From Sminthopsis crassicaudata (taxonomy: Eukaryota), in assembly GCF_048593235.1 (NCBI RefSeq), contig NC_133619.1:164376454-164440453 (forward strand): a DNA stretch of 64,000 nucleotides, in the 5' to 3' direction. Positions 4,262 through 50,056 of the stretch are shown piece by piece. The position numbers were made by a program, and so were the translations under genes. Within the stretch, counting starts at the first letter, position 1; each line of letters begins with the position of its first letter. The notes below the pieces were generated by a model that saw only the letters and a list, made by a program, of their open reading frames with translations, did no database searches and was not told the DNA's origin.

Positions 4262-5738
4262 CTTTTATTTAAACCAAGAAAAATCTGGCTACATTGTTAA
4301 TCCTTCTTACCATAAAAAGGAGAAGTCATGTTTTTTTTTTCCTTTGGTGGCTGATCTTCCAGCACCTAATTTGGAAGAGGAGACTGTTGGAAGAATGGGA
4401 GAAAAAAATCTAAGAAAAATTAAAGAGAAGGAAAAAACCTTCCAAGTACAAAAGGAGGAAGAACAAAATTTGGAATGCTAAATTGCAGTAGGAATATCTA
4501 AACAACCAAGCAGATAATGAAGCAAAGAAATGAATAAAGAAAAGGGAGAAAACTTCTCTTGGTTGAAGGTCTAGGCACATGGGTAGGGAAAGTCTATTGC
4601 TCTGAGTGAGAGAGATCTACTGGAGGATCATAGCAGACTCAAAGCTTTTGCAAGAAATAAGAAAATATAAGAGAGGTACAGGTAGAAAGGTGTTGTGAAG
4701 AATTGCAATAAATTAGTCCTCAATTGAGTAGGAAAATGAAGCAAGACATTTTGCCAAACATACTTTCATTTGGTCATGCTCTTTTTCTACCCTTCTCTTG
4801 TAGAACTTTTTGTGCCTCTTCTCAGAGCTATCCCATTATGGAACACAAGCTAGAACATGAGTATACTATCACCATATGTCTAGGTTAAAGTCCCATTTTT
4901 CAAGCCAATTAAACTCAAGTTGCAATGTTTTGAAAATCTGAAGAGCAAAATTACTGTGGTCTTAAGTGCATAGGTGTGAACAGCATTGTGTATCTGTAAT
5001 TTCATTGGAGTATTTTTAAAAGGGGAGCCATGGTGACAACACAGCCCCAGTGAAGAGAGTTGCAGCACTTTGCAAAGTGGGAGTCCTCACCTTCTGAGCA
5101 GTAAATAAAAGAACCTTCATGGGGCAAAAAATAAAAAAAAAAAAATAATAATAGGAACTCCCTTTGTGGCAAGAAGCAAAAGGAGAAAGCAATCTTTTTT
5201 CTCAGTTGAATATCTAAAAAGAAAGGAATCAGAAACAAGGTCCTTCCAAAACATCTTTTATAAATATAAAGATATCTTAATCTGATGATTGAATCATAAT
5301 TATGAAATGAGACAAAAAGGGGAAAATAAGGGGGAGAGATAGCAAAGGTTGATACTTGTTTTTTTCATGGGAGCCGTGGCTGGGAAGCAATTTTTGAAAA
5401 AAATATTTTGTTTGGGGTGAGGGCGGGTTGAGGGTGGGGGGTGTGGATAGGGGGTCTTTCCTTGCCATGTTTCTATATCAGCACATCAGAAAGATGATGT
5501 CTTGAGGTTTGGAAATGAGAACATTACTACTAAGTGAAGTGACCCAATAAGGAGATCTTTCTAAGTACTAAGAGGGAGGGAAGCAGTTTTCTTCTCAAGA
5601 GATGCTGACTCTGAAGGGTGGGATTAAAAGGAAGGTGAGAACTCAGCCCTAAATCAAAGAGTAGAAGTCCTCTCAAAAGGCAAGAGTTCTCACCTTTTTA
5701 AGGGTGGAGTTAAGAGAAGGGCTAAGCAGGGATAGACA
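4262..5738 (+). repeat. Paralogous copy of the TRIM-array intergenic spacer (3' flank plus distal promoter) with no CDS upstream of it
   Basis: Collinear with 15115-16605, starting from 'ttatttaaaccaagaaa'. Confidence 0.85.
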
Positions 5739-5746: not shown

Positions 5747-5861
5747 GAATCACACAGCTCAGTGCCAAGATCTTTTGCTGTCAGAGCACAAGGGCTGGAG
5801 CTACCTCTCTCTCTACCTGAAAAGGAAGGAACCAGAAGCTTAGGAAACTACAAGCAAGAGT

Positions 5862-6079
5862 TTCATTGAAAGCCTCCAGCTAGGTCTCACTTGCTTTCAT
5901 CTGCCTGAACTACTTCACTGACTGGGTGACTGAGAGTGCAGAGAGTGTCTTCTCCAGGGCAGTGAAGGAGTCACTGAAACCCCAATCTTTACAGAGTACA
6001 GGGGTGTCATTCATCAGACAGGTTGACTTGCTGCTGCGCAGGAATCTGCAGACTCAGTGTTGAGTGTTGATTGGCCAAG
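5862..6079 (+). pseudogene. Decayed RING-domain coding remnant in the 5' leader
   Basis: Translates across frameshifts as FIESLQLGLTC-F/-ICLNYFTDWVT...FTEYRGVIHQ...DLLLRRNLQ, matching the TRIM N-terminus and RING pattern (L-EELTCxICLDYF.DPVT...CPECR). Confidence 0.75.
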
Positions 6080-7249
6080 ATGCTCCAACCTCACCTGCTG
6101 CAGAAAGAGCTTGGCCTCAGCACCTGTGATCAACATGGAGAACGAGTGATGTTCTTCTGTGAGGAAGACCAGAGAGCCCTCTGTGATTCCTGCTTATCAG
6201 CCCCAGAGCACAAGGACCACCAAGTCCTTCCCTTGGAGACAGCAGCTGACAAGTGCAAGAACACGCTTCTGGAGATGTGGAGGATCTTACACACCAAAGA
6301 AGAGAAATTTCAAACTGCACTGGACACAATAAGAAGAAGAGAAGTACAATTCACAGAGAATACCTACACTTTGAAAGAATCAGCTATTTCTGAATATGAA
6401 AAAATTCACCAGTTTTTATGGGATGAAGAATGTCAACGCCTGGAAAGACTGGAGGAGCGATCCAGAGGTAATGTGGTCTACCTGGAGGAGAAGGAGCACG
6501 GGCTGTCCCAACAAATCCAACATCTACAAGAAATGCTGTTCCAAGTAGAAGAGAATTTGGACAAGATGCCTTTGGCAATGATACAGGATATGCCAGGCAC
6601 TTTCAAAAACAAGGAAGAGCTCCTACTTAACAAACCTGAGCTTTCTTACATTTCCTGGCCTACCTGCCCTGTCACAGGCATGAGAGAAATGCTCATGAGT
6701 TTCCACAGGGATATAACTTTTGATCCTCAATCAGCCCATCCTCATCTCATCCTGTCTCAAGATTTGAAGAGGGTCCAGTATGCAAGCACTTTTCAGGACC
6801 TGCCTGACAACAGAGGGAGATTTGACTCTTCTCATGTGGTTTTGGGAACCCAGAAATTCACCTCAGGAAAACACTATTGGGAAGTGGAGGTGGGAGATAA
6901 GACAGAGTGGGAATTGGGCATCTGTAAAGATTCAGTCAAGAGAACGGGGCTGATCTCCCCCTCATCTGAGGATATAAATACCCTCGTGGGCTTCATATCT
7001 GGAAATGAATTCTTCCTCTGGAATTCAGAAAAAGGCTGTCAATGCAGCTTACCTTTGCAAAAATTGGGCATTTTTCTGGATTGTGAAATGAGCTATATAG
7101 CATTTTATGATGTCATTGACAGATCCCTTATCTACAGTAACTCAGACATAGATTGTGAAGGACCTCTTTGCCCTTATTTCTCTCCTTGCCTTCACTATGA
7201 CGAAAGTACCACTGGTTCACTCATCATTTGCCCCAAGAGTCCACAGTAG
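6080..7249 (+). CDS. TRIML1-like: Intronless RING-less TRIML1-like protein, diverged copy (389 aa): intact B-box2, coiled coil, PRY-SPRY/B30.2
   Basis: B-box2 CDQH..C..D..C..C..H..H; PRY 'DITFDPQSAHPHLILSQDLK'; SPRY 'FTSGKHYWEVEVGDKTEWELGICKDSV' and 'FSPCL...SLIIC', resembling recalled TRIML1. The ORF track starts at TTG 6071; the first ATG is 6080 (A at -3). Confidence 0.85.
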   Translation: MLQPHLLQKELGLSTCDQHGERVMFFCEEDQRALCDSCLSAPEHKDHQVLPLETAADKCKNTLLEMWRILHTKEEKFQTALDTIRRREVQFTENTYTLKESAISEYEKIHQFLWDEECQRLERLEERSRGNVVYLEEKEHGLSQQIQHLQEMLFQVEENLDKMPLAMIQDMPGTFKNKEELLLNKPELSYISWPTCPVTGMREMLMSFHRDITFDPQSAHPHLILSQDLKRVQYASTFQDLPDNRGRFDSSHVVLGTQKFTSGKHYWEVEVGDKTEWELGICKDSVKRTGLISPSSEDINTLVGFISGNEFFLWNSEKGCQCSLPLQKLGIFLDCEMSYIAFYDVIDRSLIYSNSDIDCEGPLCPYFSPCLHYDESTTGSLIICPKSPQ

Positions 7250-10993: not shown

Positions 10994-11680
10994 TATTTGC
11001 TTTACTTTGTTTTTTAAGGTGTTATTTTTCTCAGTATTGCTTGTGTATGTGTGCATGTGTATGTGTGTTTAACAAGCTACTGACTTGTTTTTCATGATTT
11101 TCTTGGATCATTTGCCTTCCCAATTTTTATTCTACTTCTCTGACTTGATTTTGAAAATCTTTTTTGACTTTTTCCGTAAGCTGAAACCAATACCTATTTT
11201 TCTTGAAGGCTTTGGATGTAGGAGCTTTGACTTTGTTATTTTCTTCTGAGTTTCCATTTTGATTTTTCCTTGTCACTACTGTGCTTTTTATGGTGAAAAT
11301 ATTTTTTCTTGTTGTTTCCTTATTTTCACAAATTATTATTTAACTTTTCATTCTTTGTTAAAGTTGGGCTCTGTTTCCAGGGTAGAAAATGCACTGTCCT
11401 GAACTTTAGGCTTTTGTGCAGCTGTTTTCAGAGATCTTTCTGGGAATCAGCAACTTTTCTTACAAGGTAGTAGGATCTTAGCAGAGGTGTGTTTACTCCT
11501 CTTTTGACATGTGTTCTTGTCTGTGAATGACCACAGACACTCTTTTCTGTCCTGGAACTATGGCTGCAAACTCTAGTGTGCTAAATGCTCTTCCTCACTC
11601 TGGGACTGCTATCCAGGACTATGACCCAGAACCAAATATGGGCAAAACAGAGTCCTACCTCAGTGCTAGCAAAAAGACTC
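10141..11680 (-). mobile_element. L1 LINE 5' part (5' UTR plus decayed ORF1)
   Basis: Antisense ORF pieces 'KKWAFNEIKTFQAFLMNRPELNR' (ORF1 C-terminus) and coiled-coil heptads at 10689-10892; L1 5' UTR-like sequence at 11380-11680. Confidence 0.8.
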
Positions 11681-12795
11681 TGTGTGACCAAGTAACAGGT
11701 GTAGGTCATTATGCAGACAATTTAGCACAAATTAATTACTCTAGAGCAGCATATGAGCAAATTGCTGCTCCTGCTATCAAAGTATGGGGCATCCTCCCAG
11801 GAAGACAAGAGAGGGGAAGCCTTCATGAAAACAGCTCAAGGTCTGATTTTGTGGGATGTCTGCAGACAGCTGCCTACAAACTATTGGTGAAAATGCAGCA
11901 ACAGAAATTATGATAAGACAACTTGTAAAGAAAATGCTAATGAAGTTTGTAGAAGAATCATACTAGGACTACACAAGGATCATATGAGATCATGAGATGC
12001 TGTGCCACAGTGGACACAAATACCTTTTATACTCAAGTTATGATGCAAAACATGGGAAGACTAGGTCCCTTTTAGCAAAGGACTTCCAAAGAGATTCGTC
12101 AATACTTTCAATGTGGTAAAGTAGGGCATCAGAACGTTCAGTGTTGGCATAGAGATAGAATGAGAAGACAAGGTGGGAGAACAAGATCCAAAACTCCAAT
12201 GTCTAAAATACAACAGAAACTTCTATTGGGCATTAGAATGTAAATTGATTCATGGAAATGGGAAGTGGAGACCAACTGCTGAGCCCCAGGGAAAAAAAAC
12301 ACTTGGAGCATGATGGTAGCTAATGTAACAGCCAGAGAATCTTAAGAAGTTCAGTACTCAGATATGATGAATCAGTTAAGAAAAAACCTAATGGGAAAAA
12401 GGGATTACAATTGGGGAAAATAGAGTCATATGCAGCTGGGACCACTGAGATATACTCTGGAGAGGTGAAATCTGTCCCCAGCCATTTCACCTCCTGAGAG
12501 TGCTTTACAAAACTTTTTCCATACATACACTGATATAAGAAACTGGGAATATGTAGACACTATCCAGTCACTAATACAGGTAGACAATATGTGAGTTATC
12601 AACTAGGAGAAGTAGTAGCATCAGGTTTACTGATATGCTGATATTTGCCCAAACTTTGACTCCCAACAATAGAATCCAGGAATATTCTTGACTGACCATT
12701 CTATACTTACTATCAAATGTCATACCATTGGAAGGGTTGGTAGCTACAGGAACAGATTGTACAGTCATTAGAAGTTCAAATTGGCAAACCACAGT
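11681..12795 (+). mobile_element. Endogenous retrovirus internal remnant, betaretrovirus/ERV-K-like gag-(dUTPase)-pro, truncated on both sides
   Basis: Capsid-like 'DQVTGVGHYAD...YEQIA...DFVGCLQTA' and 'ENANEVCRRIILGL'; zinc knuckle YFQCGKVGHQNVQC (12103-12144) plus a second decayed knuckle; protease motif LVATGTDCTVI (from LVDTGAD) at 12737. Confidence 0.8.
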
Positions 12796-13501
12796 GGAAA
12801 GAGTGGAAGAACTTTGGGAAGTAGGAGTTCTCACCTTTTGAGGAGTAGATGAAAGGACCTTAAAGGGGCAAACAATAAAAAAAATGTAACAGCAACCTCC
12901 ATTCTGAAATGTTTTGTGGCAGAACAAAAAAAAAAAAAAAAAGAAGACTAACTTCTTTCTGAGAAAATATCTAAGAAGAAAGGAATCAGAAATAAGGTCC
13001 TTCTAAAATAATATTTTTAAAATCTAAAAATCCAGTGATTGAATCAAAATTATGAAAAGAGACCAAAAGAAGAAACTAAGGGGGAGGGATAGCAAAGGTT
13101 GATACTTGTTTTCTTCATGAAAGCCATGGGTGGGAAGCAATTTCTGAAAAAAATATTTTGTTTGGGGTGGGGGAGGAAGGGTGGTATGGGGGGAGTATGT
13201 GGATCTTGTGTTTGTGGGCAGATTTTTCGTTGCCATGTTTCTATCTCAGCACATAAGAGAGGTGATGTCTTGAGGCTTGCAAATGAGAATGTTGTTACTA
13301 AGTGACCCAATAAGGAGATGTCTCCAAGTTCAAGGAGGGAGGGAAGGAGTTTTCTTCTCAAGAGTTGCTGTCTCCTAAGGGTGGGATTAGAAGGAAGGTG
13401 AGAACTCAGCTCTCAAGCAGAGAGTGGGAATCCTCTCAAAAGACAAGAGTTGTCACCTTTTTGGGGGTGGAGTTAAGAGAAGGGCTAAGCAGGGGAAAAG
13501 A

Positions 13502-13509
13502 TATAAAAG
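13502..13509 (+). promoter_or_regulatory. TATA-like box of array copy 1 (others at 16606, 19707, 22814, 25920, 29022)
   Basis: TATAAAAG exactly 333 nt upstream of each start-codon position. Confidence 0.55.
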
Positions 13510-13623
13510 GCTCACACAACTCAGTGCCAATACTTCTTGCTGCCAGAGCTCCAGGGCAGGAGCTAGCTCTCTCCCTACCTGAAAAGGAAGGAATCAGAAG
13601 CTTAGGAACATACAAGCAAGAGT

Positions 13624-13834
13624 TTCATTGAAAGCCTCCAACTAGGTCTCACTTGCTTGCATCTGCCTGAACTACTTCACTGACTGGGTGACTGAGAGTG
13701 CAGAGAGAGTCTTCTCCAGGGCAGTGAGGGAGTCACTGAAGCCTCAACCTGTACAGAGTGCAGGGGAGTCATTCATCAGACAGGCTGACTTGCCGCTGAG
13801 CAGGAACCTGTAGACTCAGTGCACCACCGGCAAG
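13624..13834 (+). pseudogene. Decayed RING remnant in the leader of array copy 1 (present in all array units)
   Basis: LTC at 13654, ICLNYFTD at 13661, CTECRGVI at 13750, DLPLSRNL*TQCTTGK leading into the ATG; frameshifts and an in-frame TAG at 13811. Confidence 0.78.
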
Positions 13835-14995
13835 ATGCTCCAACCTCACCTGCTGCAGAAAGAGCTGGGCCTCAGCACCCGTGATCAACGTGGAGAACGA
13901 GTGATGTTCTTCTGTGAGGAAGACCACAGAGCCCTCTGTGATTCCTGTTTATCAGACCCAGAGCACAAGGACCACCAAGTCCTTCCCTTGGAGACAGCAG
14001 CTGACAAGTGCAACAACAAACTCCGGGAGATATGGAGGATCTTTCACACAAAAGAAAAGAAGCTTCAAACTACATGGGACACATTGAGAAGAGGAGAGGC
14101 ACAATTCACAGAGCATACCTGCACTTTGAAAGAGTCAGCTATTTCTGAATATGGGAAAATTCACGAGTTCTTGCGGGATGAAGAATGTCAACACCTTGAA
14201 GAGCTACAGCAGCAATACAGAGACAATGCAGTCCAACTGGAGGACAAGGAGCATGAGTTGTCCAAACATACCAAGAGTCTGCAACAAATGATGCTCCAAG
14301 TAGAAGAGAATTTGGACAAGATGCCCTTGGAAATGATCCAGAATATGCCAGGCACTTGGAAAAAGAAAGAAGAGCTCCTACTTAAAAAACCACAGCTTTC
14401 CTGCCTTTCCTGGCCTACCTGCCCTGTCACAGGCATGAGAGAAATGCTCATGAGTTTCTACAAGGATTTCACTTTTGATCCTGAATCAGCCCATCCTCAT
14501 CTCCTCCTGTCTGAAGATCTGAAGAGGGTCCAGTATGGAAGTATCTGTCAAGACCTGCCTGACAACAAAGGGAGACTTGACTCTGCTCTTAGGGTTTTAG
14601 GAGCCCAGGAATTCACCTCAGGAAAACATTATTGGGAAGTGGAGGTGGGTGACAAGACCGAATGGGAATTGGGCATTTGTAAAGATCCAGCCAGGAAAAA
14701 GGGGCTGATCTTCTCTCCTAAGCACGGAAGAACCATCCTAGGCTCCACATCTGAAAATGAATCCATTGTCTGGAAATCAGAAAAGGGCTATCATTGCAGC
14801 ACATCTGGACACATAGTGGGCATTTTTCTTGATTATGAAATGAGTTATATAGCATTTTATGATGCCATATATGGATACCTTAATGGCATAATAAACATAG
14901 ATTTTGAAGGGCCTCTTCGCCCTTATTTTTGTGCTTTCCTTTCAAAAGATGAGAGCACCCCTGTTTCACTGATCATTTGCCCCAAGTGTCCATAG
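13835..14995 (+). CDS. TRIML1-like: RING-less TRIML1-like protein, array copy 1 (386 aa)
   Basis: Intact ORF with a B-box lacking its first C/H ligands, coiled coil and PRY-SPRY. Confidence 0.85.
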   Translation: MLQPHLLQKELGLSTRDQRGERVMFFCEEDHRALCDSCLSDPEHKDHQVLPLETAADKCNNKLREIWRIFHTKEKKLQTTWDTLRRGEAQFTEHTCTLKESAISEYGKIHEFLRDEECQHLEELQQQYRDNAVQLEDKEHELSKHTKSLQQMMLQVEENLDKMPLEMIQNMPGTWKKKEELLLKKPQLSCLSWPTCPVTGMREMLMSFYKDFTFDPESAHPHLLLSEDLKRVQYGSICQDLPDNKGRLDSALRVLGAQEFTSGKHYWEVEVGDKTEWELGICKDPARKKGLIFSPKHGRTILGSTSENESIVWKSEKGYHCSTSGHIVGIFLDYEMSYIAFYDAIYGYLNGIINIDFEGPLRPYFCAFLSKDESTPVSLIICPKCP

Positions 14996-15100
14996 TAGAG
15001 GGCTTTCACAGATACTAATGACTAAGAATGACTATGAAAACTGAATGAAGATAACACTGCCAGTGGCACTCTATTTCTTTGTATTCCTGTTGAAATGGTC

Positions 15101-15106
15101 AATAAA
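15101..15106 (+). terminator. Polyadenylation signal of copy 1 (others at 18205, 21309, 24415, 27521, 30623)
   Basis: AATAAA ~105 nt after each stop codon. Confidence 0.6.
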
Positions 15107-16264
15107 GCATGATTATTTAAACCAAGAAAGCACTTTGTTTATCCTTCTTGTCATAAAAAAGGACAGGTCATATTTTTTTTTTTTTCCTTTCCCTTTAGTG
15201 GCTGATCTTCCAGCACCTAATGTGAAAGGGGAGGCTTTCAGAAGGATAGGAGAAAAAGCGGGAGGAAAGAAAATGGGAAGGGAAAAAGTTCCAGGTAGAA
15301 AAGGAGGAAGAGCAAAATTTGCAATGCTAAATAATTGGAGGAATAAAGAAACAACCAAAACAATAAGGAAGCAAACAAATAAATAAAGAAAAAAAAGACA
15401 AGCTCTCTTCTTGAAGGACTAGAGAGTGGAGTATGCAAAATCTGTTGCTCTGAGAAAGAGAGAGATCTACTTGAGGATAAGAGCAGACTCAAATATCTTT
15501 TATTAAATTAGAAAATATGAGATATGTACAGGCATCAAGGTGTTGTGGAGGACTGAAATAAATCAGTCCTCAACTGAGCAGGAAACTGAAGCAAGACATT
15601 TTGCCAAATTCACTTTCATTTCGTCCTTCTGTTTTTCTACCCTTCTCTTGTAGAACTTTTTGTGCCTCTTCTGAGAGTTATCCCATTATGGAATACAATC
15701 CAGAACATGAGTGATATTGTCACCATGTGTCCAGGTTAAAGAGCATTTTAATTTGAAGCCAATTAAACTCAATCTGCAATGTTCTGAGAAATTGAAGGGT
15801 AAAATGACTGTGGTCTAAAGTATATAGGTGTGAACAGCATTGTGTATCTGTCATTTCAATGGAGTATTTTTAAAGGGAGAGCACTAGCTCCAGTGAAGAG
15901 AGTGGAAGCTCTTTGCAAAGTGGGAGTTCTCACCTTCTGAGCAGTAAATAAAAGAACCTTCATGGGGCAAACAATGAAAAAAATAATAAAATTAGCAATT
16001 TAGTTCTCGGTTCTTCGTGGCAAGAACCAAAAGGAGAAACCAATGTTCTTTCCAAGTTGAATATCTAAAAAGAAAGGAATCAGAAATAAGGTCCTTTTAA
16101 AAAATCTTTTATACATATACAGATATCTTAATCTGATGATTGAATCATAATTAGGAAATGAGGCAAAAAGGGGAAAATAAGGGGGAGGGATAGCAAAGGT
16201 TGATCCTTGTTTTCTTCATGGGAGCCATGGGTGGGAAGCAATTTCTGAAAAAAAGATTTTGTCT

Positions 16265-16324
16265 GGGGTGGGGAAGGGTGGGGGGCATGCGGGGTGGGGG
16301 TGGGGGTGGAGGTGCTTGGGGGGG
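16265..16324 (+). other. G-rich, G-quadruplex-prone tract in each spacer (also 19366-19425, 22473-22532, 25579-25638, 28683-28741)
   Basis: More than seven runs of G3 or longer within 60 nt. Confidence 0.7.
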
Positions 16325-17007
16325 TGTCTTTCCTTGTCATGTTTCCATCTCAGAACATCAGAAAGGTGATATCTTGAGGTTTGCAAATGAGAATGTTACT
16401 GCTAAGTGACCCAATGGGAAGATCTTTCCAAATACTAAGAGGGAGGGAAGGAGTTTTCTTCTCAAGAGATGCTGACTCTGAAGGGTGGGATTAGAAGGAA
16501 GGTGAGAACTCAGCCCTGAAGCAGAGGGTGGAAGTCCTCTCAAAAGACAAGAGTTGTCACCTTTTTGGGGGTGGAGTTAAGAGAAGGGCTAAGCAGGGGA
16601 AAAGATATAAAAGGCTCACACAACTCAGTGCCAATACTTTTTGCTGCCAGAGCTCCAGGGCAGGAGCTAGCTCTCTCCCTACCTGAAAAGGAAGGAATCA
16701 GAAGCTTAGGAACATACAAGCAAGAGTTTCATTGAAAGCCTCCAGCTAGGTCTCACTTGCTTGCATCTGCCTGAACTACTTCACTGACTGGGTGACTGAG
16801 AGTGCAGAGAGAGTCTTCTCCAGGGCAGTGAGGGAGTCACTGAAGCCTCAACCTGTACAGAGTGCAGGGGAGTCATTCATCAGACAGGCTGACTTGCCGC
16901 TGAGCAGGAACCTGTAGACTCAGTGCACCACCGGCAAGATTCTCCAACCTCACCTGCTGCAGAAAGAGCTGGGCCTCAGCACCCGTGATCAACGTGGAGA
17001 ACGAGTG

Positions 17008-18099
17008 ATGTTCTTCTGTGAGGAAGACCACAGAGCCCTCTGTGATTCCTGTTTATCAGACCCAGAGCACAAGGACCACCAAGTCCTTCCCTTGGAGACA
17101 GCAGCTGACAAGTGCAACAACAAACTCCGGGAGATATGGAGGATCTTTCACACAAAAGAAAAGAAGCTTCAAACTACATGGGACACATTGAGAAGAGGAG
17201 AGGCACAATTCACAGAGCATACCTGCACTTTGAAAGAGTCAGCTATTTCTGAATATGGGAAAATTCACGAGTTCTTGCGGGATGAAGAATGTCAACACCT
17301 TGAAGAGCTACAGCAGCAATACAGAGACAATGCAGTCCAACTGGAGGACAAGGAGCATGAGTTGTCCAAACATACCAAGAGTCTGCAACAAATGATGCTC
17401 CAAGTAGAAGAGAATTTGGACAAGATGCCCTTGGAAATGATCCAGAATATGCCAGGCACTTGGAAAAAGAAAGAAGAGCTCCTACTTAAAAAACCACAGC
17501 TTTCCTGCCTTTCCTGGCCTACCTGCCCTGTCACAGGCATGAGAGAAATGCTCATGAGTTTCTACAAGGATTTCACTTTTGATCCTGAATCAGCCCATCC
17601 TCATCTCCTCCTGTCTGAAGATCTGAAGAGGGTCCAGTATGGAAGTATCTGTCAAGACCTGCCTGACAACAAAGGGAGACTTGACTCTGCTCTTAGGGTT
17701 TTAGGAGCCCAGGAATTCACCTCAGGAAAACATTATTGGGAAGTGGAGGTGGGTGACAAGACCGAATGGGAATTGGGCATCTGTAAAGATCCAGCCAGGA
17801 AAAAGGGGCTGATCTTCTCTCCTAAGCACGGAAGAACCATCCTAGGCTCCACATCTGAAAATGAATCCATTGTCTGGAAATCAGAAAAGGGCTATCATTG
17901 CAGCACATCTGGACACATAGTGGGCATGTTTCTTGATTATGAAATGAGTTATATAGCATTTTATGATGCCATATATGGATACCTTAATGGCATAATAAAC
18001 ATAGATTTTGAAGGGCCTCTTCGCCCTTATTTCTGTGCTTTCCTTTCAAAAGATGAGAGCACCCCTGTTTCACTGATCATTTGCCCCAAGTGTCCATAG
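17008..18099 (+). CDS. TRIML1-like: RING-less TRIML1-like protein, array copy 2; first ATG mutated to ATT (16939), next ATG gives 363 aa
   Basis: 'ggcaagATTctccaa' versus 'ggcaagATGctccaa' in the other copies; the ORF is otherwise intact. Confidence 0.7.
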   Translation: MFFCEEDHRALCDSCLSDPEHKDHQVLPLETAADKCNNKLREIWRIFHTKEKKLQTTWDTLRRGEAQFTEHTCTLKESAISEYGKIHEFLRDEECQHLEELQQQYRDNAVQLEDKEHELSKHTKSLQQMMLQVEENLDKMPLEMIQNMPGTWKKKEELLLKKPQLSCLSWPTCPVTGMREMLMSFYKDFTFDPESAHPHLLLSEDLKRVQYGSICQDLPDNKGRLDSALRVLGAQEFTSGKHYWEVEVGDKTEWELGICKDPARKKGLIFSPKHGRTILGSTSENESIVWKSEKGYHCSTSGHIVGMFLDYEMSYIAFYDAIYGYLNGIINIDFEGPLRPYFCAFLSKDESTPVSLIICPKCP

Positions 18100-20039
18100 T
18101 AGAGGGCTTTCACAGATACTAATGACTAAGAATGACTAGGAAAACTGAATGAAGATAACACTGCCAGTGGCACTCTATTTCTTTGTATTCCTGTTGAAAT
18201 GGTCAATAAAGCATGATTATTAAAACCAAGAAAGCACTTTGTTTATCCTTCTCGTCATAAAAAAGGACAGGCCATTTTTTTTTTTTCCTTTCCCTTTAGT
18301 GGCTGATCTTCCAGCACCTAATGTGAAAGGGGAGGCTTTCAGAAGGATAGGAGAAAAAGCGGGAGGAAAGAAAATGGGAAGGGAAAAAGTTCCAGGTAGA
18401 AAAGGAGGAAGAGCAAAATTTGCAATGCTAAATAATTGGAGGAATAAAGAAACAACCAAAACAATAAGGAAGCAAACAAAGAAATAAAGAAAAAAAAGAC
18501 AAGCTCTCTTCTTGAAGGACTAGAGAGTGGAGTATGCAAAATCTGTTGCTCTGAGAAAGAGAGAGATCTACTTGAGGATAAGAGCAGACTCAAATATCTT
18601 TTATTAAATTAGAAAATATGAGATATGTACAGGCATCAAGGTGTTGTGGAGGACTGAAATAAATCAGTCCTCAACTGAGCAGGAAACTGAAGCAAGACAT
18701 TTTGCCAAATTCACTTTCATTTCGTCCTTCTGTTTTTCTACCCTTCTCTTGTAGAACTTTTTGTGCCTCTTCTGAGAGTTATCCCATTATGGAATACAAT
18801 CCAGAACATGAGTGATATTGTCACCATGTGTCCAGGTTAAAGAGCATTTTAATTTGAAGCCAATTAAACTCAATCTGCAATGTTCTGAGAAATTGAAGGG
18901 TAAAATGACTGTGGTCTAAAGTATATAGGTGTGAACAGCATTGTGTATCTGTCATTTCAATGGAGTATTTTTAAAGGGAGAGCACTAGCCCCAGTGAAGA
19001 GAGTGGAAGCACTTTGCAAAGTGGGAGTTCTCACCTTCTGAGCAGTAAATAAAAGAACCTTCGTGGGGCAAACAATGAAAAAAATAATAAAATTAGCAAT
19101 TTAGTTCTCGGCTCTTTGTGGCAAGAACCAAAAGGAGAAACCAATGTTCTTTCCAAGTTGAATATCTAAAAAGAAAGGAATCAGAAATAAGGTCCTTTTA
19201 AAAAATCTTTTATACATATACAGATATCTTAATCTGATGATTGAATCATAATTAGGAAATGAGGCAAAAAGGGGAAAATAAGGGGGAGGGATAGCAAAGG
19301 TTGATCCTTGTTTTCTTCATGGGAGCCATGGGTGGGAAGCAATTTCTGAAAAAAAGATTTTGTCTGGGGTGGGGAAGGGTGGGGGGCATGCGGGGTGGGG
19401 GTGGGGGTGGAGGTGCTTGGGGGGGTGTCTTTCCTTGTCATGTTTCCATCTCAGAACATCAGAAAGGTGATATCTTGAGGTTTGCAAATGAGAATGTTAC
19501 TGCTAAGTGACCCAATGGGAAGATCTTTCCAAATACTAAGAGGGAGGGAAGGAGTTTTCTTCTCAAGAGATGCTGACTCTGAAGGGTGGGATTAGAAGGA
19601 AGGTGAGAACTCAGCCCTGAAGCAGAGGGTGGAAGTCCTCTCAAAAGACAAGAGTTGTCACCTTTTTGGGGGTGGAGTTAAGAGAAGGGCTAAGCAGGGG
19701 AAAAGATATAAAAGGCTCACACAACTCAGTGCCTATACTTTTTGCTGCCAGAGCTCCAGGGCAGGAGCTAGCTCTCTCCCTACCTGAAAAGGAAGGGATC
19801 AGAAGCTTAGGAACATACAAGCAAGAGTTTCATTGAAAGCCTCCAGCTAGGTCTCACTTGCTTGCATCTGCCTGAACTACTTCACTGACTGGGTGACTGA
19901 GAGTGCAGAGAGAGTCTTCTCCAGGGCAGTGAGGGAGTCACTGAAGCCTCAACCTGTACAGAGTGCAGGGGAGTCATTCATCAGACAGGCTGACTTGCCG
20001 CTGAGCAGGAACCTGTAGACTCAGTGCACCACCGGCAAG

Positions 20040-21201
20040 ATGCTCCAACCTCACCTGCTGCAGAAAGAGATGGGCCTCAGCACCCGTGATCAACGTGGAG
20101 AACGAGTGATGTTCTTCTGTGAGGAAGACCACAGAGCCCTCTGTGATTCCTGTTTATCAGACCCAGAGCACAAGGACCACCAAGTCCTTCCCTTGGAGAC
20201 AGCAGCTGACAAGTGCAACAACAAACTCCGGGAGATATGGAGGATCTTTCACACAAAAGAAAAGAAGCTTCAAACTGCATGGGACACATTGAGAAGAGGA
20301 GAGGCACAATTCACAGAGCATACCTGCACTTTGAAAGAGTCAGCTATTTCTGAATATGGGAAAATTCACGAGTTCTTGCGGGATGAAGAATGTCAACACC
20401 TTGAAGAGCTACAGCAGCAATACAGAGACAATGCAGTCCAACTGGAGGACAAGGAGCATGAGTTGTCCAAACATACCAAGAGTCTGCAACAAATGATGCT
20501 CCAAGTAGAAGAGGATTTGGACAAGATGCCCTTGGAAATGATCCAGAATATGCCAGGCACTTGGAAAAAGAAAGAAGAGCTCCTACTTAAAAAAACCACA
20601 GCTTTCCTGCCTTTCCTGGCCTACCTGCCCTGTCACAGGCATGAGAGAAATGCTCATGAGTTTCTACAAGGATTTCACTTTTGATCCTGAATCAGCCCAT
20701 CCTCATCTCCTCCTGTCTGAAGATCTGAAGAGGGTCCAGTATGGAAGTATCTGTCAAGACCTGCCTGACAACAAAGGGAGACTTGACTCTGCTCTTAGGG
20801 TTTTAGGAGCCCAGGAATTCACCTCAGGAAAACATTATTGGGAAGTGGAGGTGGGTGACAAGACCGAATGGGAATTGGGCATCTGTAAAGATCCAGCCAG
20901 GAAAAAGGGGCTGATCTTCTCTCCTAAGCACGGAAGAACCATCCTAGGCTCCACATCTGAAAATGAATCCATTGTCTGGAAATCAGAAAAGGGCTATCAT
21001 TGCAGCACATCTGGACACATAGTGGGCATTTTTCTTGATTATGAAATGAGTTATATAGCATTTTATGATGCCATATATGGATACCTTAATGGCATAATAA
21101 ACATAGATTTTGAAGGGCCACTTCGCCCTTATTTCTGTGCTTTCCTTTCAAAAGATGAGAGCACTCCTGTTTCACTGATCATTTGCCCCAAGTGTCCATA
21201 G
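20040..21201 (+). pseudogene. TRIML1-like: TRIML1-like array copy 3 with a +1 frameshift (A7 instead of A6 at 20589-20595); real pseudogene/truncated allele or a homopolymer error
   Basis: ORF is split into 20040-20684 and 20641-21201; the only disruption seen is one extra A. Confidence 0.7.
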
Positions 21202-23146
21202 TAGAGGGCTTTCACAGATACTAATGACTAAGAATGACTTTATGAAAACTGAAAGAAGATAACACTGCCAGTGGCACTCTATTTCTTTGTATTCCTGTTG
21301 AAATGGTCAATAAAGCATGATTATTTAAACCAAGAAAGCACTTTGTTTATCCTTCTTGTCATAAAAAAGGACAGGTCATATTTTTTTTTTTTTCCTTTCC
21401 CTTTAGTGGCTGATCTTCCAGCACCTAATGTGAAAGGGGAGGCTTTCAGAAGGATAGGAGAAAAAGCGGGAGGAAAGAAAATGGGAAGGGAAAAAGTTCC
21501 AGGTAGAAAAGGAGGAAGAGCAAAATTTGCAATGCTAAATAATTGGAGGAATAAAGAAACAACCAAAACAATAAGGAAGCAAACAAATAAATAAAGAAAA
21601 AAAAGACAAGCTCTCTTCTTGAAGGACTAGAGAGTGGAGTATGCAAAATCTGTTGCTCTGAGAAAGAGAGAGATCTACTTGAGGATAAGAGCAGACTCAA
21701 ATATCTTTTATTAAATTAGAAAATATGAGATATGTACAGGCATCAAGGTGTTGTGGAGGACTGAAATAAATCAGTCCTCAACTGAGCAGGAAACTGAAGC
21801 AAGACATTTTGCCAAATTCACTTTCATTTCGTCCTTCTGTTTTTCTACCCTTCTCTTGTAGAACTTTTTGTGCCTCTTCTGAGAGTTATCCCATTATGGA
21901 ATACAATCCAGAACATGAGTGATATTGTCACCATGTGTCCAGGTTAAAGAGCATTTTAATTTAAAGCCAATTAAACTCAATCTGCAATGTTCTGAGAAAT
22001 TGAAGGGTAAAATGACTGTGGTCTAAAGTATATAGGTGTGAACAGCATTGTGTATCTGTCATTTCAATGGAGTATTTTTAAAGGGAGAGCACTAGCCCCA
22101 GTGAAGAGAGTGGAAGCACTTTGCAAAGTGGGAGTTCTCACCTTCTGAGCAGTAAATAAAAGAACCTTCGTGGGGCAAACAATGAAAAAAATAATAAAAT
22201 TAGCAATTTAGTTCTCGGTTCTTTGTGGCAAGAACCAAAAGGAGAAACCAATGTTCTTTCCAAGTTGAATATCTAAAAAGAAAGGAATCAGAAATAAGGT
22301 CCTTTTAAAAAATCTTTTATACATATACAGATATCTTAATCTGATGATTGAATCATAATTAGGAAATGAGGCAAAAAGGGGAAAATAAGGGGGAGGGATA
22401 GCAAAGGTTGATCCTTGTTTTCTTCATGGGAGCCATGGGTGGGAAGCAATTTCTGAAAAAAAGATTTTGTCTGGGGTGGGGAAGGGTGGGGGGCATGCGG
22501 GGTGGGGGTGGGGGTGGGGGTGGTTGGGGGGGTGTCTTTCCTTGTCATGTTTCCATCTCAGCACATCAGAAAGGTGATATCTTGAGGTTTGCAAATGAGA
22601 ATGTTACTGCTAAGTGACCCAATGGGAAGATCTTTCCAAATACTAAGAGGGAGGGAAGGAGTTTTCTTCTCAAGAGATGCTGACTCTGAAGGGTGGGATT
22701 AGAAGGAAGGTGAGAGCTCAGCCCTGAAGCAGAGGGTGGAAGTCCTCTCAAAAGACAAGAGTTGTCACCTTTTGGGGGGTGGAGTTAAGAGAAGGGCTAA
22801 GCAGGGGAAAAGATATAAAAGGCTCACACAACTCAGTGCCAATACTTTTTGCTGCCAGAGCTCCAGGGCAGGAGCTAACTCTCTCCCTACCTGAAAAGGA
22901 AGGGATCAGAAGCTTAGGAACATACAAGCAAGAGTTTCATTGAAAGCCCTCAGCTAGGTCTCACTTGCTTGCATCTGCCTGAACTACTTCACTGACTGGG
23001 TGACTGAGAGTCTAGAGAGAGTCTTCTCCAGGGCAGTGAGGGAGTCACTGAAGCCTCAACCTGTACAGAGTGCAGGGGAGTCATTCATCAGACAGGCTGA
23101 CTTGCCGCTGAGCAGGAACCTGTAGACTCAGTGCACCACCGGCAAG

Positions 23147-24307
23147 ATGCTCCAACCTCACCTGCTGCAGAAAGAGATGGGCCTCAGCACCCGTGATCAA
23201 CGTGGAGAACGAGTGATGTTCTTCTGTGAGGAAGACCACAGAGCCCTCTGTGATTCCTGTTTATCAGACCCAGAGCACAAGGACCACCAAGTCCTTCCCT
23301 TGGAGACAGCAGCTGACAAGTGCAACAACAAACTCCGGGAGATATGGAGGATCTTTCACACAAAAGAAAAGAAGCTTCAAACTGCATGGGACACATTGAG
23401 AAGAGGAGAGGCACAATTCACAGAGCATACCTGCACTTTGAAAGAGTCAGCTATTTCTGAATATGGGAAAATTCACGAGTTCTTACGGGATGAAGAATGT
23501 CAACACCTTGAAGAGCTACAGCAGCAATACAGAGACAATGCAGTCCAACTGGAGGACAAGGAGCATGAGTTGTCCAAACATACCAAGAGTCTGCAACAAA
23601 TGATGCTCCAAGTAGAAGAGGATTTGGACAAGATGCCCTTGGAAATGATCCAGAATATGCCAGGCACTTGGAAAAAGAAAGAAGAGCTCCTACTTAAAAA
23701 ACCACAGCTTTCCTGCCTTTCCTGGCCTACCTGCCCTGTCACAGGCATGAGAGAAATGCTCATGAGTTTCTACAAGGATTTCACTTTTGATCCTGAATCA
23801 GCCCATCCTCATCTCCTCCTGTCTGAAGATCTGAAGAGGGTCCAGTATGGAAGTATCTGTCAAGACCTGCCTGACAACAAAGGGAGACTTGACTCTGCTC
23901 TTAGGGTTTTAGGAGCCCAGGAATTCACCTCAGGAAAACATTATTGGGAAGTGGAGGTGGGTGACAAGACCGAATGGGAATTGGGCATCTGTAAAGATCC
24001 AGCCAGGAAAAAGGGGCTGATCTTCTCTCCTAAGCACGGAAGAACCATCCTAGGCTCCACATCTGAAAATGAATCCATTGTCTGGAAATCAGAAAAGGGC
24101 TATCATTGCAGCACATCTGGACACATAGTGGGCATTTTTCTTGATTATGAAATGAGTTATATAGCATTTTATGATGCCATATATGGATACCTTAATGGCA
24201 TAATAAACATAGATTTTGAAGGGCCACTTCGCCCTTATTTCTGTGCTTTCCTTTCAAAAGATGAGAGCACTCCTGTTTCACTGATCATTTGCCCCAAGTG
24301 TCCATAG
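23147..24307 (+). CDS. TRIML1-like: RING-less TRIML1-like protein, array copy 4 (386 aa)
   Basis: Intact ORF; translation identical to copies 5 and 6. Confidence 0.85.
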   Translation: MLQPHLLQKEMGLSTRDQRGERVMFFCEEDHRALCDSCLSDPEHKDHQVLPLETAADKCNNKLREIWRIFHTKEKKLQTAWDTLRRGEAQFTEHTCTLKESAISEYGKIHEFLRDEECQHLEELQQQYRDNAVQLEDKEHELSKHTKSLQQMMLQVEEDLDKMPLEMIQNMPGTWKKKEELLLKKPQLSCLSWPTCPVTGMREMLMSFYKDFTFDPESAHPHLLLSEDLKRVQYGSICQDLPDNKGRLDSALRVLGAQEFTSGKHYWEVEVGDKTEWELGICKDPARKKGLIFSPKHGRTILGSTSENESIVWKSEKGYHCSTSGHIVGIFLDYEMSYIAFYDAIYGYLNGIINIDFEGPLRPYFCAFLSKDESTPVSLIICPKCP

Positions 24308-26252
24308 TAGAGGGCTTTCACAGATACTAATGACTAAGAATGACTTTATGAAAACTGAAAGAAGATAACACTGCCAGTGGCACTCTATTTCTTTGTATTC
24401 CTGTTGAAATGGTCAATAAAGCATGATTATTTAAACCAAGAAAGCACTTTGTTTATCCTTCTTGTCATAAAAAAGGACAGGTCATATTTTTTTTTTTTTC
24501 CTTTCCCTTTAGTGGCTGATCTTCCAGCACCTAATGTGAAAGGGGAGGCTTTCAGAAGGATAGGAGAAAAAGCGGGAGGAAAGAAAATGGGAAGGGAAAA
24601 AGTTCCAGGTAGAAAAGGAGGAAGAGCAAAATTTGCAATGCTAAATAATTGGAGGAATAAAGAAACAACCAAAACAATAAGGAAGCAAACAAATAAATAA
24701 AGAAAAAAAAGACAAGCTCTCTTCTTGAAGGACTAGAGAGTGGAGTATGCAAAATCTGTTGCTCTGAGAAAGAGAGAGATCTACTTGAGGATAAGAGCAG
24801 ACTCAAATATCTTTTATTAAATTAGAAAATATGAGATATGTACAGGCATCAAGGTGTTGTGGAGGACTGAAATAAATCAGTCCTCAACTGAGCAGGAAAC
24901 TGAAGCAAGACATTTTGCCAAATTCACTTTCATTTCGTCCTTCTGTTTTTCTACCCTTCTCTTGTAGAACTTTTTGTGCCTCTTCTGAGAGTTATCCCAT
25001 TATGGAATACAATCCAGAACATGAGTGATATTGTCACCATGTGTCCAGGTTAAAGAGCATTTTAATTTAAAGCCAATTAAACTCAATCTGCAATGTTCTG
25101 AGAAATTGAAGGGTAAAATGACTGTGGTCTAAAGTATATAGGTGTGAACAGCATTGTGTATCTGTCATTTCAATGGAGTATTTTTAAAGGGAGAGCACTA
25201 GCCCCAGTGAAGAGAGTGGAAGCACTTTGCAAAGTGGGAGTTCTCACCTTCTGAGCAGTAAATAAAAGAACCTTCGTGGGGCAAACAATGAAAAAAATAA
25301 TAAAATTAGCAATTTAGTTCTCGGTTCTTTGTGGCAAGAACCAAAAGGAGAAACCAATGTTCTTTCCAAGTTGAATATCTAAAAAGAAAGGAATCAGAAA
25401 TAAGGTCCTTTTAAAAAATCTTTTATACATATACAGATATCTTAATCTGATGATTGAATCATAATTAGGAAATGAGGCAAAAAGGGGAAAATAAGGGGGA
25501 GGGATAGCAAAGGTTGATCCTTGTTTTCTTCATGGGAGCCATGGGTGGGAAGCAATTTCTGAAAAAAAGATTTTGTCTGGGGTGGGGAAGGGTGGGGGGC
25601 ATGCGGGGTGGGGGTGGGGGTGGGGGTGGTTGGGGGGGTGTCTTTCCTTGTCATGTTTCCATCTCAGCACATCAGAAAGGTGATATCTTGAGGTTTGCAA
25701 ATGAGAATGTTACTGCTAAGTGACCCAATGGGAAGATCTTTCCAAATACTAAGAGGGAGGGAAGGAGTTTTCTTCTCAAGAGATGCTGACTCTGAAGGGT
25801 GGGATTAGAAGGAAGGTGAGAACTCAGCCCTGAAGCAGAGGGTGGAAGTCCTCTCAAAAGACAAGAGTTGTCACCTTTTGGGGGGTGGAGTTAAGAGAAG
25901 GGCTAAGCAGGGGAAAAGATATAAAAGGCTCACACAACTCAGTGCCAATACTTTTTGCTGCCAGAGCTCCAGGGCAGGAGCTAGCTCTCTCCCTACCTGA
26001 AAAGGAAGGGATCAGAAGCTTAGGAACATACAAGCAAGAGTTTCATTGAAAGCCTCCAGCTAGGTCTCACTTGCTTGCATCTGCCTGAACTACTTCACTG
26101 ACTGGGTGACTGAGAGTGCAGAGAGAGTCTTCTCCAGGGCAGTGAGGGAGTCACTGAAGCCTCAACCTGTACAGAGTGCAGGGGAGTCATTCATCAGACA
26201 GGCTGACTTGCCGCTGAGCAGGAACCTGTAGACTCAGTGCACCACCGGCAAG

Positions 26253-27413
26253 ATGCTCCAACCTCACCTGCTGCAGAAAGAGATGGGCCTCAGCACCCGT
26301 GATCAACGTGGAGAACGAGTGATGTTCTTCTGTGAGGAAGACCACAGAGCCCTCTGTGATTCCTGTTTATCAGACCCAGAGCACAAGGACCACCAAGTCC
26401 TTCCCTTGGAGACAGCAGCTGACAAGTGCAACAACAAACTCCGGGAGATATGGAGGATCTTTCACACAAAAGAAAAGAAGCTTCAAACTGCATGGGACAC
26501 ATTGAGAAGAGGAGAGGCACAATTCACAGAGCATACCTGCACTTTGAAAGAGTCAGCTATTTCTGAATATGGGAAAATTCACGAGTTCTTACGGGATGAA
26601 GAATGTCAACACCTTGAAGAGCTACAGCAGCAATACAGAGACAATGCAGTCCAACTGGAGGACAAGGAGCATGAGTTGTCCAAACATACCAAGAGTCTGC
26701 AACAAATGATGCTCCAAGTAGAAGAGGATTTGGACAAGATGCCCTTGGAAATGATCCAGAATATGCCAGGCACTTGGAAAAAGAAAGAAGAGCTCCTACT
26801 TAAAAAACCACAGCTTTCCTGCCTTTCCTGGCCTACCTGCCCTGTCACAGGCATGAGAGAAATGCTCATGAGTTTCTACAAGGATTTCACTTTTGATCCT
26901 GAATCAGCCCATCCTCATCTCCTCCTGTCTGAAGATCTGAAGAGGGTCCAGTATGGAAGTATCTGTCAAGACCTGCCTGACAACAAAGGGAGACTTGACT
27001 CTGCTCTTAGGGTTTTAGGAGCCCAGGAATTCACCTCAGGAAAACATTATTGGGAAGTGGAGGTGGGTGACAAGACCGAATGGGAATTGGGCATCTGTAA
27101 AGATCCAGCCAGGAAAAAGGGGCTGATCTTCTCTCCTAAGCACGGAAGAACCATCCTAGGCTCCACATCTGAAAATGAATCCATTGTCTGGAAATCAGAA
27201 AAGGGCTATCATTGCAGCACATCTGGACACATAGTGGGCATTTTTCTTGATTATGAAATGAGTTATATAGCATTTTATGATGCCATATATGGATACCTTA
27301 ATGGCATAATAAACATAGATTTTGAAGGGCCACTTCGCCCTTATTTCTGTGCTTTCCTTTCAAAAGATGAGAGCACTCCTGTTTCACTGATCATTTGCCC
27401 CAAGTGTCCATAG
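26253..27413 (+). CDS. TRIML1-like: RING-less TRIML1-like protein, array copy 5 (386 aa)
   Basis: Intact ORF. Confidence 0.85.
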   Translation: MLQPHLLQKEMGLSTRDQRGERVMFFCEEDHRALCDSCLSDPEHKDHQVLPLETAADKCNNKLREIWRIFHTKEKKLQTAWDTLRRGEAQFTEHTCTLKESAISEYGKIHEFLRDEECQHLEELQQQYRDNAVQLEDKEHELSKHTKSLQQMMLQVEEDLDKMPLEMIQNMPGTWKKKEELLLKKPQLSCLSWPTCPVTGMREMLMSFYKDFTFDPESAHPHLLLSEDLKRVQYGSICQDLPDNKGRLDSALRVLGAQEFTSGKHYWEVEVGDKTEWELGICKDPARKKGLIFSPKHGRTILGSTSENESIVWKSEKGYHCSTSGHIVGIFLDYEMSYIAFYDAIYGYLNGIINIDFEGPLRPYFCAFLSKDESTPVSLIICPKCP

Positions 27414-49813: not shown

Positions 49814-50056
49814 NNNNNNNNNNNNNNNNNNNNNNNNNNNNNNNNNNNNNNNNNNNNNNNNNNNNNNNNNNNNNNNNNNNNNNNNNNNNNNNNNNNNNNN
49901 NNNNNNNNNNNNNNNNNNNNNNNNNNNNNNNNNNNNNNNNNNNNNNNNNNNNNNNNNNNNNNNNNNNNNNNNNNNNNNNNNNNNNNNNNNNNNNNNNNNN
50001 NNNNNNNNNNNNNNNNNNNNNNNNNNNNNNNNNNNNNNNNNNNNNNNNNNNNNNNN
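49814..50056. other. Assembly gap (243 N)
   Basis: Run of N. Confidence 1.

Follow-up and report, generated by a model that had tools for sequence, protein, structure and literature searches.

A RING domain that probably decayed in place forms the putative 5' leader of RING-less TRIML1-like genes in dasyurid marsupials

Can a TRIM gene shed its catalytic RING domain and remain a gene, and what then becomes of the DNA that encoded the domain? The question was raised by a 64-kb stretch of the genome of Sminthopsis crassicaudata, known as the fat-tailed dunnart (the window, 64,000 nucleotides in full), which contained seven intronless TRIML1-like genes, namely one diverged copy and six 3.1-kb tandem units. 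The top database match of the 386-residue open reading frame (ORF) at 13835-14995 was a Sminthopsis crassicaudata protein named "putative E3 ubiquitin-protein ligase TRIML1" (99% identical), and this annotation is misleading because no RING is encoded. A reading of the window made without database searches (the sequence-only reading) had placed a fossil RING in the leader of every copy, and our results bore this out, since a 25-nucleotide stretch of the fossil, CATCTGCCTGAACTACTTCACTGAC, occurred once upstream of each of the seven copies. We hold it probable that this fossil is a RING decayed in place, which now forms the leader of RING-less, independently derived TRIML1-like genes. The fossil segments were located as follows.

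13610-13834, + strand: fossil RING-coding segment of array unit 1, running from the ancestral start to the last base ahead of the present ATG, now the putative 5' leader (alignment to intact genes)
16714-16938, + strand: fossil RING of array unit 2 (25-nucleotide stretch and alignment)
19815-20039, + strand: fossil RING of array unit 3 (25-nucleotide stretch)
22922-23146, + strand: fossil RING of array unit 4 (25-nucleotide stretch and alignment)
26028-26252, + strand: fossil RING of array unit 5 (25-nucleotide stretch)
29130-29354, + strand: fossil RING of array unit 6 (25-nucleotide stretch)
5848-6079, + strand: fossil RING of the diverged copy, with the same indels plus a 7-nucleotide insertion bearing TGA, and with the last Cys pair lost

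Homology of the leader to a RING was assessed by frameshift-aware local protein-to-DNA alignment (BLOSUM62, gap 11/1, frameshift 15) of the leader 13540-13834 with residues 1-80 of six RING-bearing marsupial homologues (P0015, P0016, P0018, P0022, P0027, and P0032). An example of the N-terminus of RING-bearing homologues is LIENLKADLTCSICLAYFTDPVTVKCGHSFCTECLLQCREGANETLTCPECRGVIKYSDLVPNKNLQNLSITGK, followed by (T/M/R)LRPHLLQ. The leader scored 77-111 against 25 ± 4 for shuffles (24-26 ± 4 over 1000 dinucleotide-preserving shuffles, maximum 50), and 430 genomic control segments, drawn from the right half, where the window is free of genes, scored at most 51. The score with dog TRIML1 was 54, borderline and just over the controls. 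The pieces of the fossil were also found in the expected frames by tblastn, with E = 5e-8 in a 64-kb search space, and the match to TRIM RINGs put forward in the sequence-only reading was upheld. At the DNA level, the fossil was 66-73% identical to intact RING coding sequence across about 220 nucleotides. The intact comparators were Dromiciops P0027 (L004), Antechinus P0062 (L005), and the dunnart locus L007, and the RING of the comparators is bona fide (46-47 bits with Pfam zf-C3HC4_4, cut-off 30). Pfam gave no RING match with three separate open pieces of the fossil, which is not evidence against homology because generic profiles lack the power to detect pieces of 25-55 residues; the fossil is recognisable by family-specific comparison, not by generic Pfam RING profiles.

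The alignment to intact genes resolved the lesions in array unit 1 base by base.

13610-13612, + strand: ancestral start codon, now ATA, aligned with the ATG of Dromiciops P0027, Antechinus P0062, and the dunnart L007 gene
13622-13623, + strand: site of a 1-nucleotide deletion (ancestral codon 5/6), also in the window copies, Sarcophilus L001, and Antechinus L002
13654-13666, + strand: Cys1 TGC (13654-13656) and Cys2 TGC (13664-13666) with one extra base between them, that is, 4 nucleotides plus ATC and not one codon plus ATC
13698-13699, + strand: junction of a 16-nucleotide deletion that removed V-K-C-G-H-S with the ligands Cys3 and His4, its ends ambiguous by a few nucleotides
13699-13710, + strand: Cys5 TGC (13699-13701), kept, and the Cys6 codon (13708-13710), which is AGT (Ser) in the 3.1-kb family and TGT in the diverged copy
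13750-13761, + strand: Cys7-x-x-Cys8 (TGT ACA GAG TGC), kept, and TTT ACA GAG TAC in the diverged copy
13769-13776, + strand: 4-nucleotide insertion (TCAT doubled) that restores the frame of the present ORF, 3 nucleotides in Sarcophilus
13811-13813, + strand: TAG, a stop in frame with the present ORF and 8 codons upstream of its ATG, confined to the 3.1-kb family (other dasyurid copies have CAG)

The ancestral reading path through the fossil ran from frame 1 to frame 2, back to frame 1 and again to frame 2, with three frame changes between Cys1 and the present ATG and one upstream. The translations quoted in the sequence-only reading were exact (FIESLQLGLTC and CTECRGVIHQ in frame 1; ICLNYFTDWVT and DLPLSRNL*TQCTTGKM in frame 2). 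In the middle of the fossil the ancestral frame was frame 1 (ECRESLLQGSEGVTEASTCTECRGVIHQ, aligned to FCTECLLRCREETNETLTCPECRGVIKY) and not the open frame 2; a frame-2 reading of this part (SAERVFSRAV against CGHSFCRAC) was considered and rejected, as the DNA alignment showed the 16-nucleotide deletion with frame 1 as the ancestral one. The distance of 108 nucleotides from the Cys1 codon (13654-13656) to the last Cys codon (13759-13761), taken before as close to a normal RING, was correct and is accounted for by the lesions, as an intact gene has 123 and 123 + 1 - 16 = 108. DNA alignment likewise placed the 1-nucleotide insertion after Cys1 in the diverged copy, and TTT..TAC was read there at the last Cys pair, giving the Phe/Tyr that had been described. 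This insertion, between Cys1 and Ile-Cys2, was present in all dasyurid copies and in neither the intact genes nor the Dromiciops RING-less gene. The sequence-only reading had missed the 16-nucleotide deletion across Cys3/His4, the 1-nucleotide deletion near codon 5, the 4-nucleotide insertion, and the change of ATG to ATA. The array family retains five of the eight ligand codons (Cys1, 2, 5, 7, and 8), and the diverged copy those of Cys1, 2, 5, and 6; nowhere in the fossil were eight canonically spaced zinc ligands found in a single open frame. Judging by its sequence, the fossil cannot be made to encode a RING by any splicing or frameshifting. The lost ATG, the 1-nucleotide deletion, the 1-nucleotide and 4-nucleotide insertions, and the 16-nucleotide deletion were shared by the two lineages in the window, in agreement with the proposal that the RING decayed in situ before these lineages split.

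The loss is older than the sequence-only reading had supposed. The same lesions were found outside the dunnart window: in the DNA upstream of the genes, Sarcophilus P0004 (L001) and Antechinus P0010 (L002), as well as the paralogue P0041 of the dunnart (L006), likewise have the lost ATG and the four indels, save that in P0041 the 1-nucleotide deletion was not resolved by the alignment. In maximum-likelihood trees of the post-RING region only, in which TRIML2 sequences were not included, the 16 dasyurid RING-less proteins formed one clade (support 100/100) with two subclades, each containing Sminthopsis and Sarcophilus and one also Antechinus. Since the lesions are common to both subclades and to the three genera, the RING was already dead before a duplication that itself predated the split of these genera. 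Thus the dating before the split of the window lineages was right as far as it went, and the shared lesions argue that RING loss predates the divergence of Sminthopsis, Sarcophilus, and Antechinus. These dasyurid genera split roughly tens of millions of years ago.

The sister of the RING-less clade, with weak support (80/78), was the RING-bearing pair of Antechinus P0062 and the dunnart P0069 locus (L007), where the coding sequence of the whole RING has been kept, with none of its eight ligands missing. More distant RING-bearing relatives were found in Trichosurus, Vombatus, Dromiciops, and Monodelphis, and eutherian TRIML1 fell outside all marsupial sequences. As read from this tree and the alignments, the RING loss is a dasyuromorph event that took place in situ on the stem of the dasyurid lineage. 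Because the RING-less dasyurid clade is nested in a marsupial-only radiation with RING-bearing sisters, a RING-less ancestor shared with eutherian TRIML2 is excluded, and the view that the loss was convergent with the eutherian RING-less form, not inherited, gained support from the same topology. The argument by which that view had been reached, that a remnant still readable in the DNA implies a loss well after the marsupial-eutherian split, fared less well: readability alone is a weak clock because it stems partly from the leader evolving more slowly than synonymous sites.

The sister locus in the dunnart showed the opposite pattern of decay. At L007:4590-5462, on the chromosome record of P0041 at about 655.36 Mb, an intact RING was followed by loss of frame before the PRY/SPRY, and the continuous ORF stopped after 291 codons. 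The NCBI model P0069 bypasses the intact RING start and takes another upstream exon instead, while Antechinus P0062 is a 372-residue spliced model without an SPRY match.

The region upstream of the fossil contained one further conserved element.

13500-13510, + strand: TATA-like element (GATATAAAAGG), putative promoter, about 110 nucleotides before the ancestral start and 334 nucleotides before the present ATG

The element was kept in 7 of 7 window copies, and its block aligned with the upstream region of the RING-bearing Dromiciops and Antechinus genes, about 105-110 nucleotides before the ancestral ATG; it presumably functions as a promoter. In the 304-312 nucleotides from 30 nucleotides past this element to the present ATG, no ATG was found in any of the seven copies, against about 4.5 expected (P(0) = 0.007 by shuffling). 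Intact RING sequence contained 4-5 ATGs by our count, and the Sarcophilus and Antechinus leaders had a single upstream ATG with a 6-codon ORF. The present start codon has an A at -3 and aligns with the residue that follows "GK" and precedes LRPHLLQ. Conservation of the ORF, the A at -3, and the lack of upstream ATGs point to translation from the present ATG (13835 and its equivalents), consistent with the suggestion that translation had moved to an internal Met.

In four paralogues of dunnart and devil (P0008, P0041, P0026, and P0007), annotated N-terminal extensions of 26-57 residues represented read-through of the fossil in whichever frame was open; MSLNYLPDWVTESAQSVFSRALRES is one example. 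The codon for the Ile preceding Cys2 was now ATG in P0041 (L006:3001-3200), and L006 contained two tandem copies of the 406-residue P0041 gene model.

The genes downstream of the leaders were arranged as follows.

13001-31628: tandem array of six 3.1-kb units
13835-14995, + strand: ORF of array unit 1, 386 residues, with B-box2, coiled coil, PRY, and SPRY
6080-7249, + strand: ORF of the diverged copy, 389 residues, with intact B-box ligands

Units 2-6 were 99.1-99.97% identical to one another and 97.2-97.4% identical to unit 1, and the diverged copy was about 80% identical to the array units. Pfam recognised B-box, PRY, and SPRY in the window ORFs and gave no RING match in them; they have no N-terminal C3HC4 RING. 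Against a zf-B_box cut-off of 24.1 bits, the 6080 copy scored 42.3 and the two array copies that were run scored 28.5-30.9. In all six array units the first B-box Cys and His were replaced by Arg (13880-13882, TGT to CGT; 13889-13891, CAT to CGT; LSTRDQRG against LSTCDQHG). The putative ligands replaced are Cys16 and His19, and both were kept in the 6080 copy and in every other paralogue compared. The youngest array may therefore be eroding a second zinc-binding site after the RING, or may be sliding into pseudogenes. PRY (E = 2e-17) and SPRY (E = 1e-14) domains were recognised by Pfam, with matches in the PDB to the B30.2 domains of TRIM58, TRIM11, and TRIM21 (E = 1e-32 to 1e-34), and full-length TRIM72 structures aligned with residues 23-365 across their B-box, coiled coil, and SPRY (E = 1e-27). 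A coiled coil was represented in the structure model by a long helix at residues 52-160, with a predicted local distance difference test score (pLDDT) of 53-89 per 10-residue block, lowest at about 91-120. ORFs of 379-389 residues were maintained in the three genera, and the ratio of nonsynonymous to synonymous divergence (dN/dS) was 0.43-0.59, significantly below 1 (Fisher p from 2e-6 to 1e-3). From these domains, the products are not expected to have intrinsic E3 ligase activity.

The following course of events would account for these results. The ancestor would have been a marsupial-specific intronless TRIML1-like gene encoding RING, B-box2, coiled coil, and PRY/SPRY in one ORF. In a stem dasyurid paralogue, the start codon mutated, and two single-base indels, the 16-nucleotide deletion, and the 4-nucleotide insertion would have broken the frame. 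The promoter with its TATA element presumably did not move, and transcription would have continued from it, so that the dead RING became about 225 nucleotides of a leader of roughly 300 nucleotides. Scanning ribosomes would pass the ATG-free leader and initiate at the first ATG between the old RING and the B-box. The predicted product is a RING-less TRIM that would dimerise via its coiled coil and bind targets via PRY/SPRY without an E3 ligase module, and by analogy it would most likely be a non-catalytic binder or modulator, possibly of RING-bearing paralogues. The RING-less gene would then have been duplicated repeatedly in dasyurids, the 3.1-kb array being the youngest and further eroded burst.

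Several points weigh against this reading. Transcription, the leader, and the start codon are what we infer from the DNA. The position of the start is Lys in the nearest RING-bearing sister, which makes a pre-existing internal Met uncertain; as it is Met in 5 of the 14 RING-bearing paralogues of the post-RING tree set (P0024, P0025, P0027, P0043, and P0050), the Met may be ancestral or new. The annotated N-terminal extensions in P0008, P0041, and P0026 mean that the start may differ between copies. The structure model of the 386-residue protein was of low confidence (mean pLDDT 61, predicted template modelling score 0.37), and a dN/dS near 0.5 indicates moderate constraint only. The young array itself, with Arg for two B-box ligands, has one ATT start and one frameshift, and open frames in units of such similarity (99.1-99.97% among units 2-6) are no proof of selection.

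Some of these points are what would be expected if the RING-less copies were non-functional, retro-derived pseudogenes whose open frames are young or lucky and whose internal Met start is an artefact of gene prediction. Two of the six array units are disrupted: in unit 2 the start codon is ATT (16939-16941), and in unit 3 an extra A within an A-run at about 20589 (coding-sequence position 550), possibly a sequencing error in a homopolymer, breaks the ORF into parts of 214 and 186 residues. All six have lost Cys16 and His19, the intact ORFs of units 97-99.97% identical carry little information, and several members of the family in the database are truncated or patched models. A pseudogene graveyard would not, however, be expected to keep full-length ORFs in at least 16 paralogues of three genera at a synonymous divergence of 0.3-0.4 with the dN/dS given above, nor an ATG-free leader behind a conserved promoter block, and the 6080 copy and most paralogues have all B-box ligands; we consider this explanation improbable. 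A RING that is still intact or could be restored, the indels being sequencing errors or being bypassed by splicing, editing, or ribosomal frameshifting, is effectively refuted. Single-base indels are a common error of long reads, and the extra A at about 20589 could be one, but the same four indels occurred in seven copies and in the independent assemblies of Sarcophilus and Antechinus, so that assembly error was rejected as their source by their presence in three species. Moreover, the deletion of Cys3/His4 and the loss of the start codon come with substitutions of further ligands, Cys6 in the 3.1-kb family and Cys7/Cys8 in the diverged copy.

That the former RING is kept as a regulatory 5' untranslated region or promoter-proximal element would complement the decayed-in-place leader without replacing it, and we regard this as possible but doubtful. 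The divergence of the leader between paralogues was 0.12-0.25 against a synonymous divergence of 0.30-0.40 in the adjoining ORF, and it was lower than that of the 3' flank (0.18-0.55) in 5 of 6 dasyurid pairs, which hints at some constraint or at gene conversion; the upstream ATGs have also all been removed. On the other side, the RNA of the leader folded no more stably than shuffles (z = 0.23), indels and a new stop have accumulated freely, and the low divergence could stem from tandem gene conversion or from the estimation of synonymous divergence. Counts by codon position, intended as a test of the neutrality of the fossil, were uninformative, since two intact RINGs differed equally at positions 1, 2, and 3 (12, 15, and 14 differences).

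The dasyurid loss was not the only one in the family. In Dromiciops gliroides, the RING-less P0017 lies 48 kb from the RING-bearing P0027, its sister in the tree (98/94), and upstream of P0017 a fossil RING (L003:2783-3000) was found that is 87% identical to the P0027 RING. Its lesions are ATG to ATA, Cys2 TGC to TAC (Tyr), Cys7 TGC to AGC (Ser), and a 20-nucleotide deletion across Cys3/His4 that overlaps the segment lost in the dasyurid 16-nucleotide deletion; it has none of the dasyurid indels, and the ORF begins at the Met equivalent to the dasyurid start. These lesions indicate that the Dromiciops loss is a separate and younger event. A diprotodontian RING-less clade (Trichosurus, wombat, and koala) was also separate in the tree (98/94) and is RING-less by annotation only. 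A minimum of three to four changes in RING state was needed on the tree within the subfamily, and six to nine across all 85 rows, some of which may be artefacts of gene models. In the two cases read at the DNA level the route was alike, with the ATG lost, Cys3/His4 deleted, and an ORF from a Met before the B-box, but the dasyurid leader was cleared of upstream ATGs and the Dromiciops leader was not. RING-less paralogues may have arisen three or more times, in dasyurids, Dromiciops and (as judged by annotation) diprotodontians, and we advance only tentatively, as less likely than its opposite, the idea that shedding was recurrent and selected and that the products are ligase-dead partners or antagonists of RING-bearing paralogues. 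If it were true, the genes would be a marsupial counterpart of TRIML2 and would contradict the published placing of RING-less TRIML as an innovation specific to eutherians and tied to placentation.

The family was intronless in the members checked, both RING-bearing (P0018 and P0027) and RING-less (P0004, P0010, P0017, and P0020), with RING-bearing genes of 1407 and 1410 nucleotides for 468 and 469 residues. As the family is intronless even when RING-bearing, the RING would always have been contiguous with the rest of the ORF. The best eutherian matches of the window genes were all TRIML1 (35-40% identity), yet these genes sit in a large marsupial-only radiation, and their one-to-one orthology to eutherian TRIML1 is doubtful. 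An early-branching marsupial clade (P0073/P0076), which includes the multi-exon gene P0073 (6347 nucleotides for 480 residues), is the likelier TRIML1 orthologue, and a multi-exon candidate of this kind suggests that the intronless expansion may have begun as a retrocopy.

Other features of the window were minor. Partial matches to the 3' part of an array unit were found at 4265-5255, before the diverged copy, and at 12792-13008, just before unit 1, which indicates that the array was formerly longer or has been rearranged. An ORF of 107-113 residues began 50-70 nucleotides past the stop of units 1, 3, 4, and 6 (15045-15386, 21271-21594, 24377-24700, and 30585-30908); Pfam gave no match for the two of them searched (15045-15383 and 24377-24697), and they are probably chance ORFs of the 3' region. 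A short Gag_p24-like ORF lay between the diverged copy and the array (11527-11910, + strand; 23.6 bits, just below the cut-off of 24), and a reverse-transcriptase piece (RVT_1, E = 7e-14) was found in a short ORF at 58589-58930 (+ strand) in the AT-rich right half; both look like fragments only. The right half (32001-64000) had a G+C content of 26-35%, against 40-46% in the gene array, contained no TRIM ORF, and included a run of 243 N at 49814-50056.

Among known systems, the closest is TRIML2, the RING-less paralogue of TRIML1 in eutherians, for which an action independent of ligase activity has been proposed, possibly dominant inhibition by way of oligomerisation (PMC6993854). Both it and the dasyurid genes are TRIML-type PRY/SPRY proteins that lost a catalytic RING after gene duplication. 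The dasyurid loss was independent, inside a marsupial-only clade, and not by descent from a stem-eutherian RING-less gene; the dasyurid genes have kept the B-box, which TRIML2 does not have (PMC6993854), and they have no introns and still carry the dead RING within the putative leader. Marsupial TRIML1 has been stated to be RING-bearing and RING-less TRIML to be eutherian-specific (PMC6993854, PMC12007913), but these studies considered one orthologue per marsupial, and the large "TRIML1-like" expansion was left untreated. Our search of open-access papers found no description of RING-less marsupial TRIML1-like genes or of a RING remnant in a leader. That marsupials made RING-less TRIML1-like genes independently, and more than once, bears on arguments that connect TRIML2 with eutherian placentation.

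Within marsupials, the RING-bearing paralogues (Dromiciops P0027, Antechinus P0062, the dunnart gene at L007:4590-, and Trichosurus P0015/P0018) share the intronless layout and the promoter block with the window genes and are 50-56% identical to them in protein sequence from B-box to SPRY; they differ in having the ATG and all eight zinc ligands in frame, and the dunnart and Antechinus sisters look damaged downstream. The Dromiciops RING-less genes P0017/P0019 resemble the dasyurid genes in the change of ATG to ATA, the Cys3/His4 deletion, and the ORF from the equivalent Met, and differ in having lesions of their own and none of the dasyurid indels.

TRIMs without a RING form a known category (PMC2533329, PMC8720877, PMC4455283), and no new kind of molecule or mechanism was revealed here. 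The dasyurid genes are a case of independent RING loss, recurrent in marsupials, within a kind of TRIM already known. Other RING-less members are TRIM14, TRIM16, pyrin/TRIM20, TRIM29, and TRIM44, which keep the B-box, the coiled coil, and a C-terminal domain; to our knowledge, no RING remnant in place in the leader DNA has been described for them. What distinguishes the dasyurid genes is that the loss was caught together with its DNA fossil, which provides a dated, base-by-base record of how a catalytic domain can be lost from a multi-domain immune/reproductive gene without destruction of the gene.

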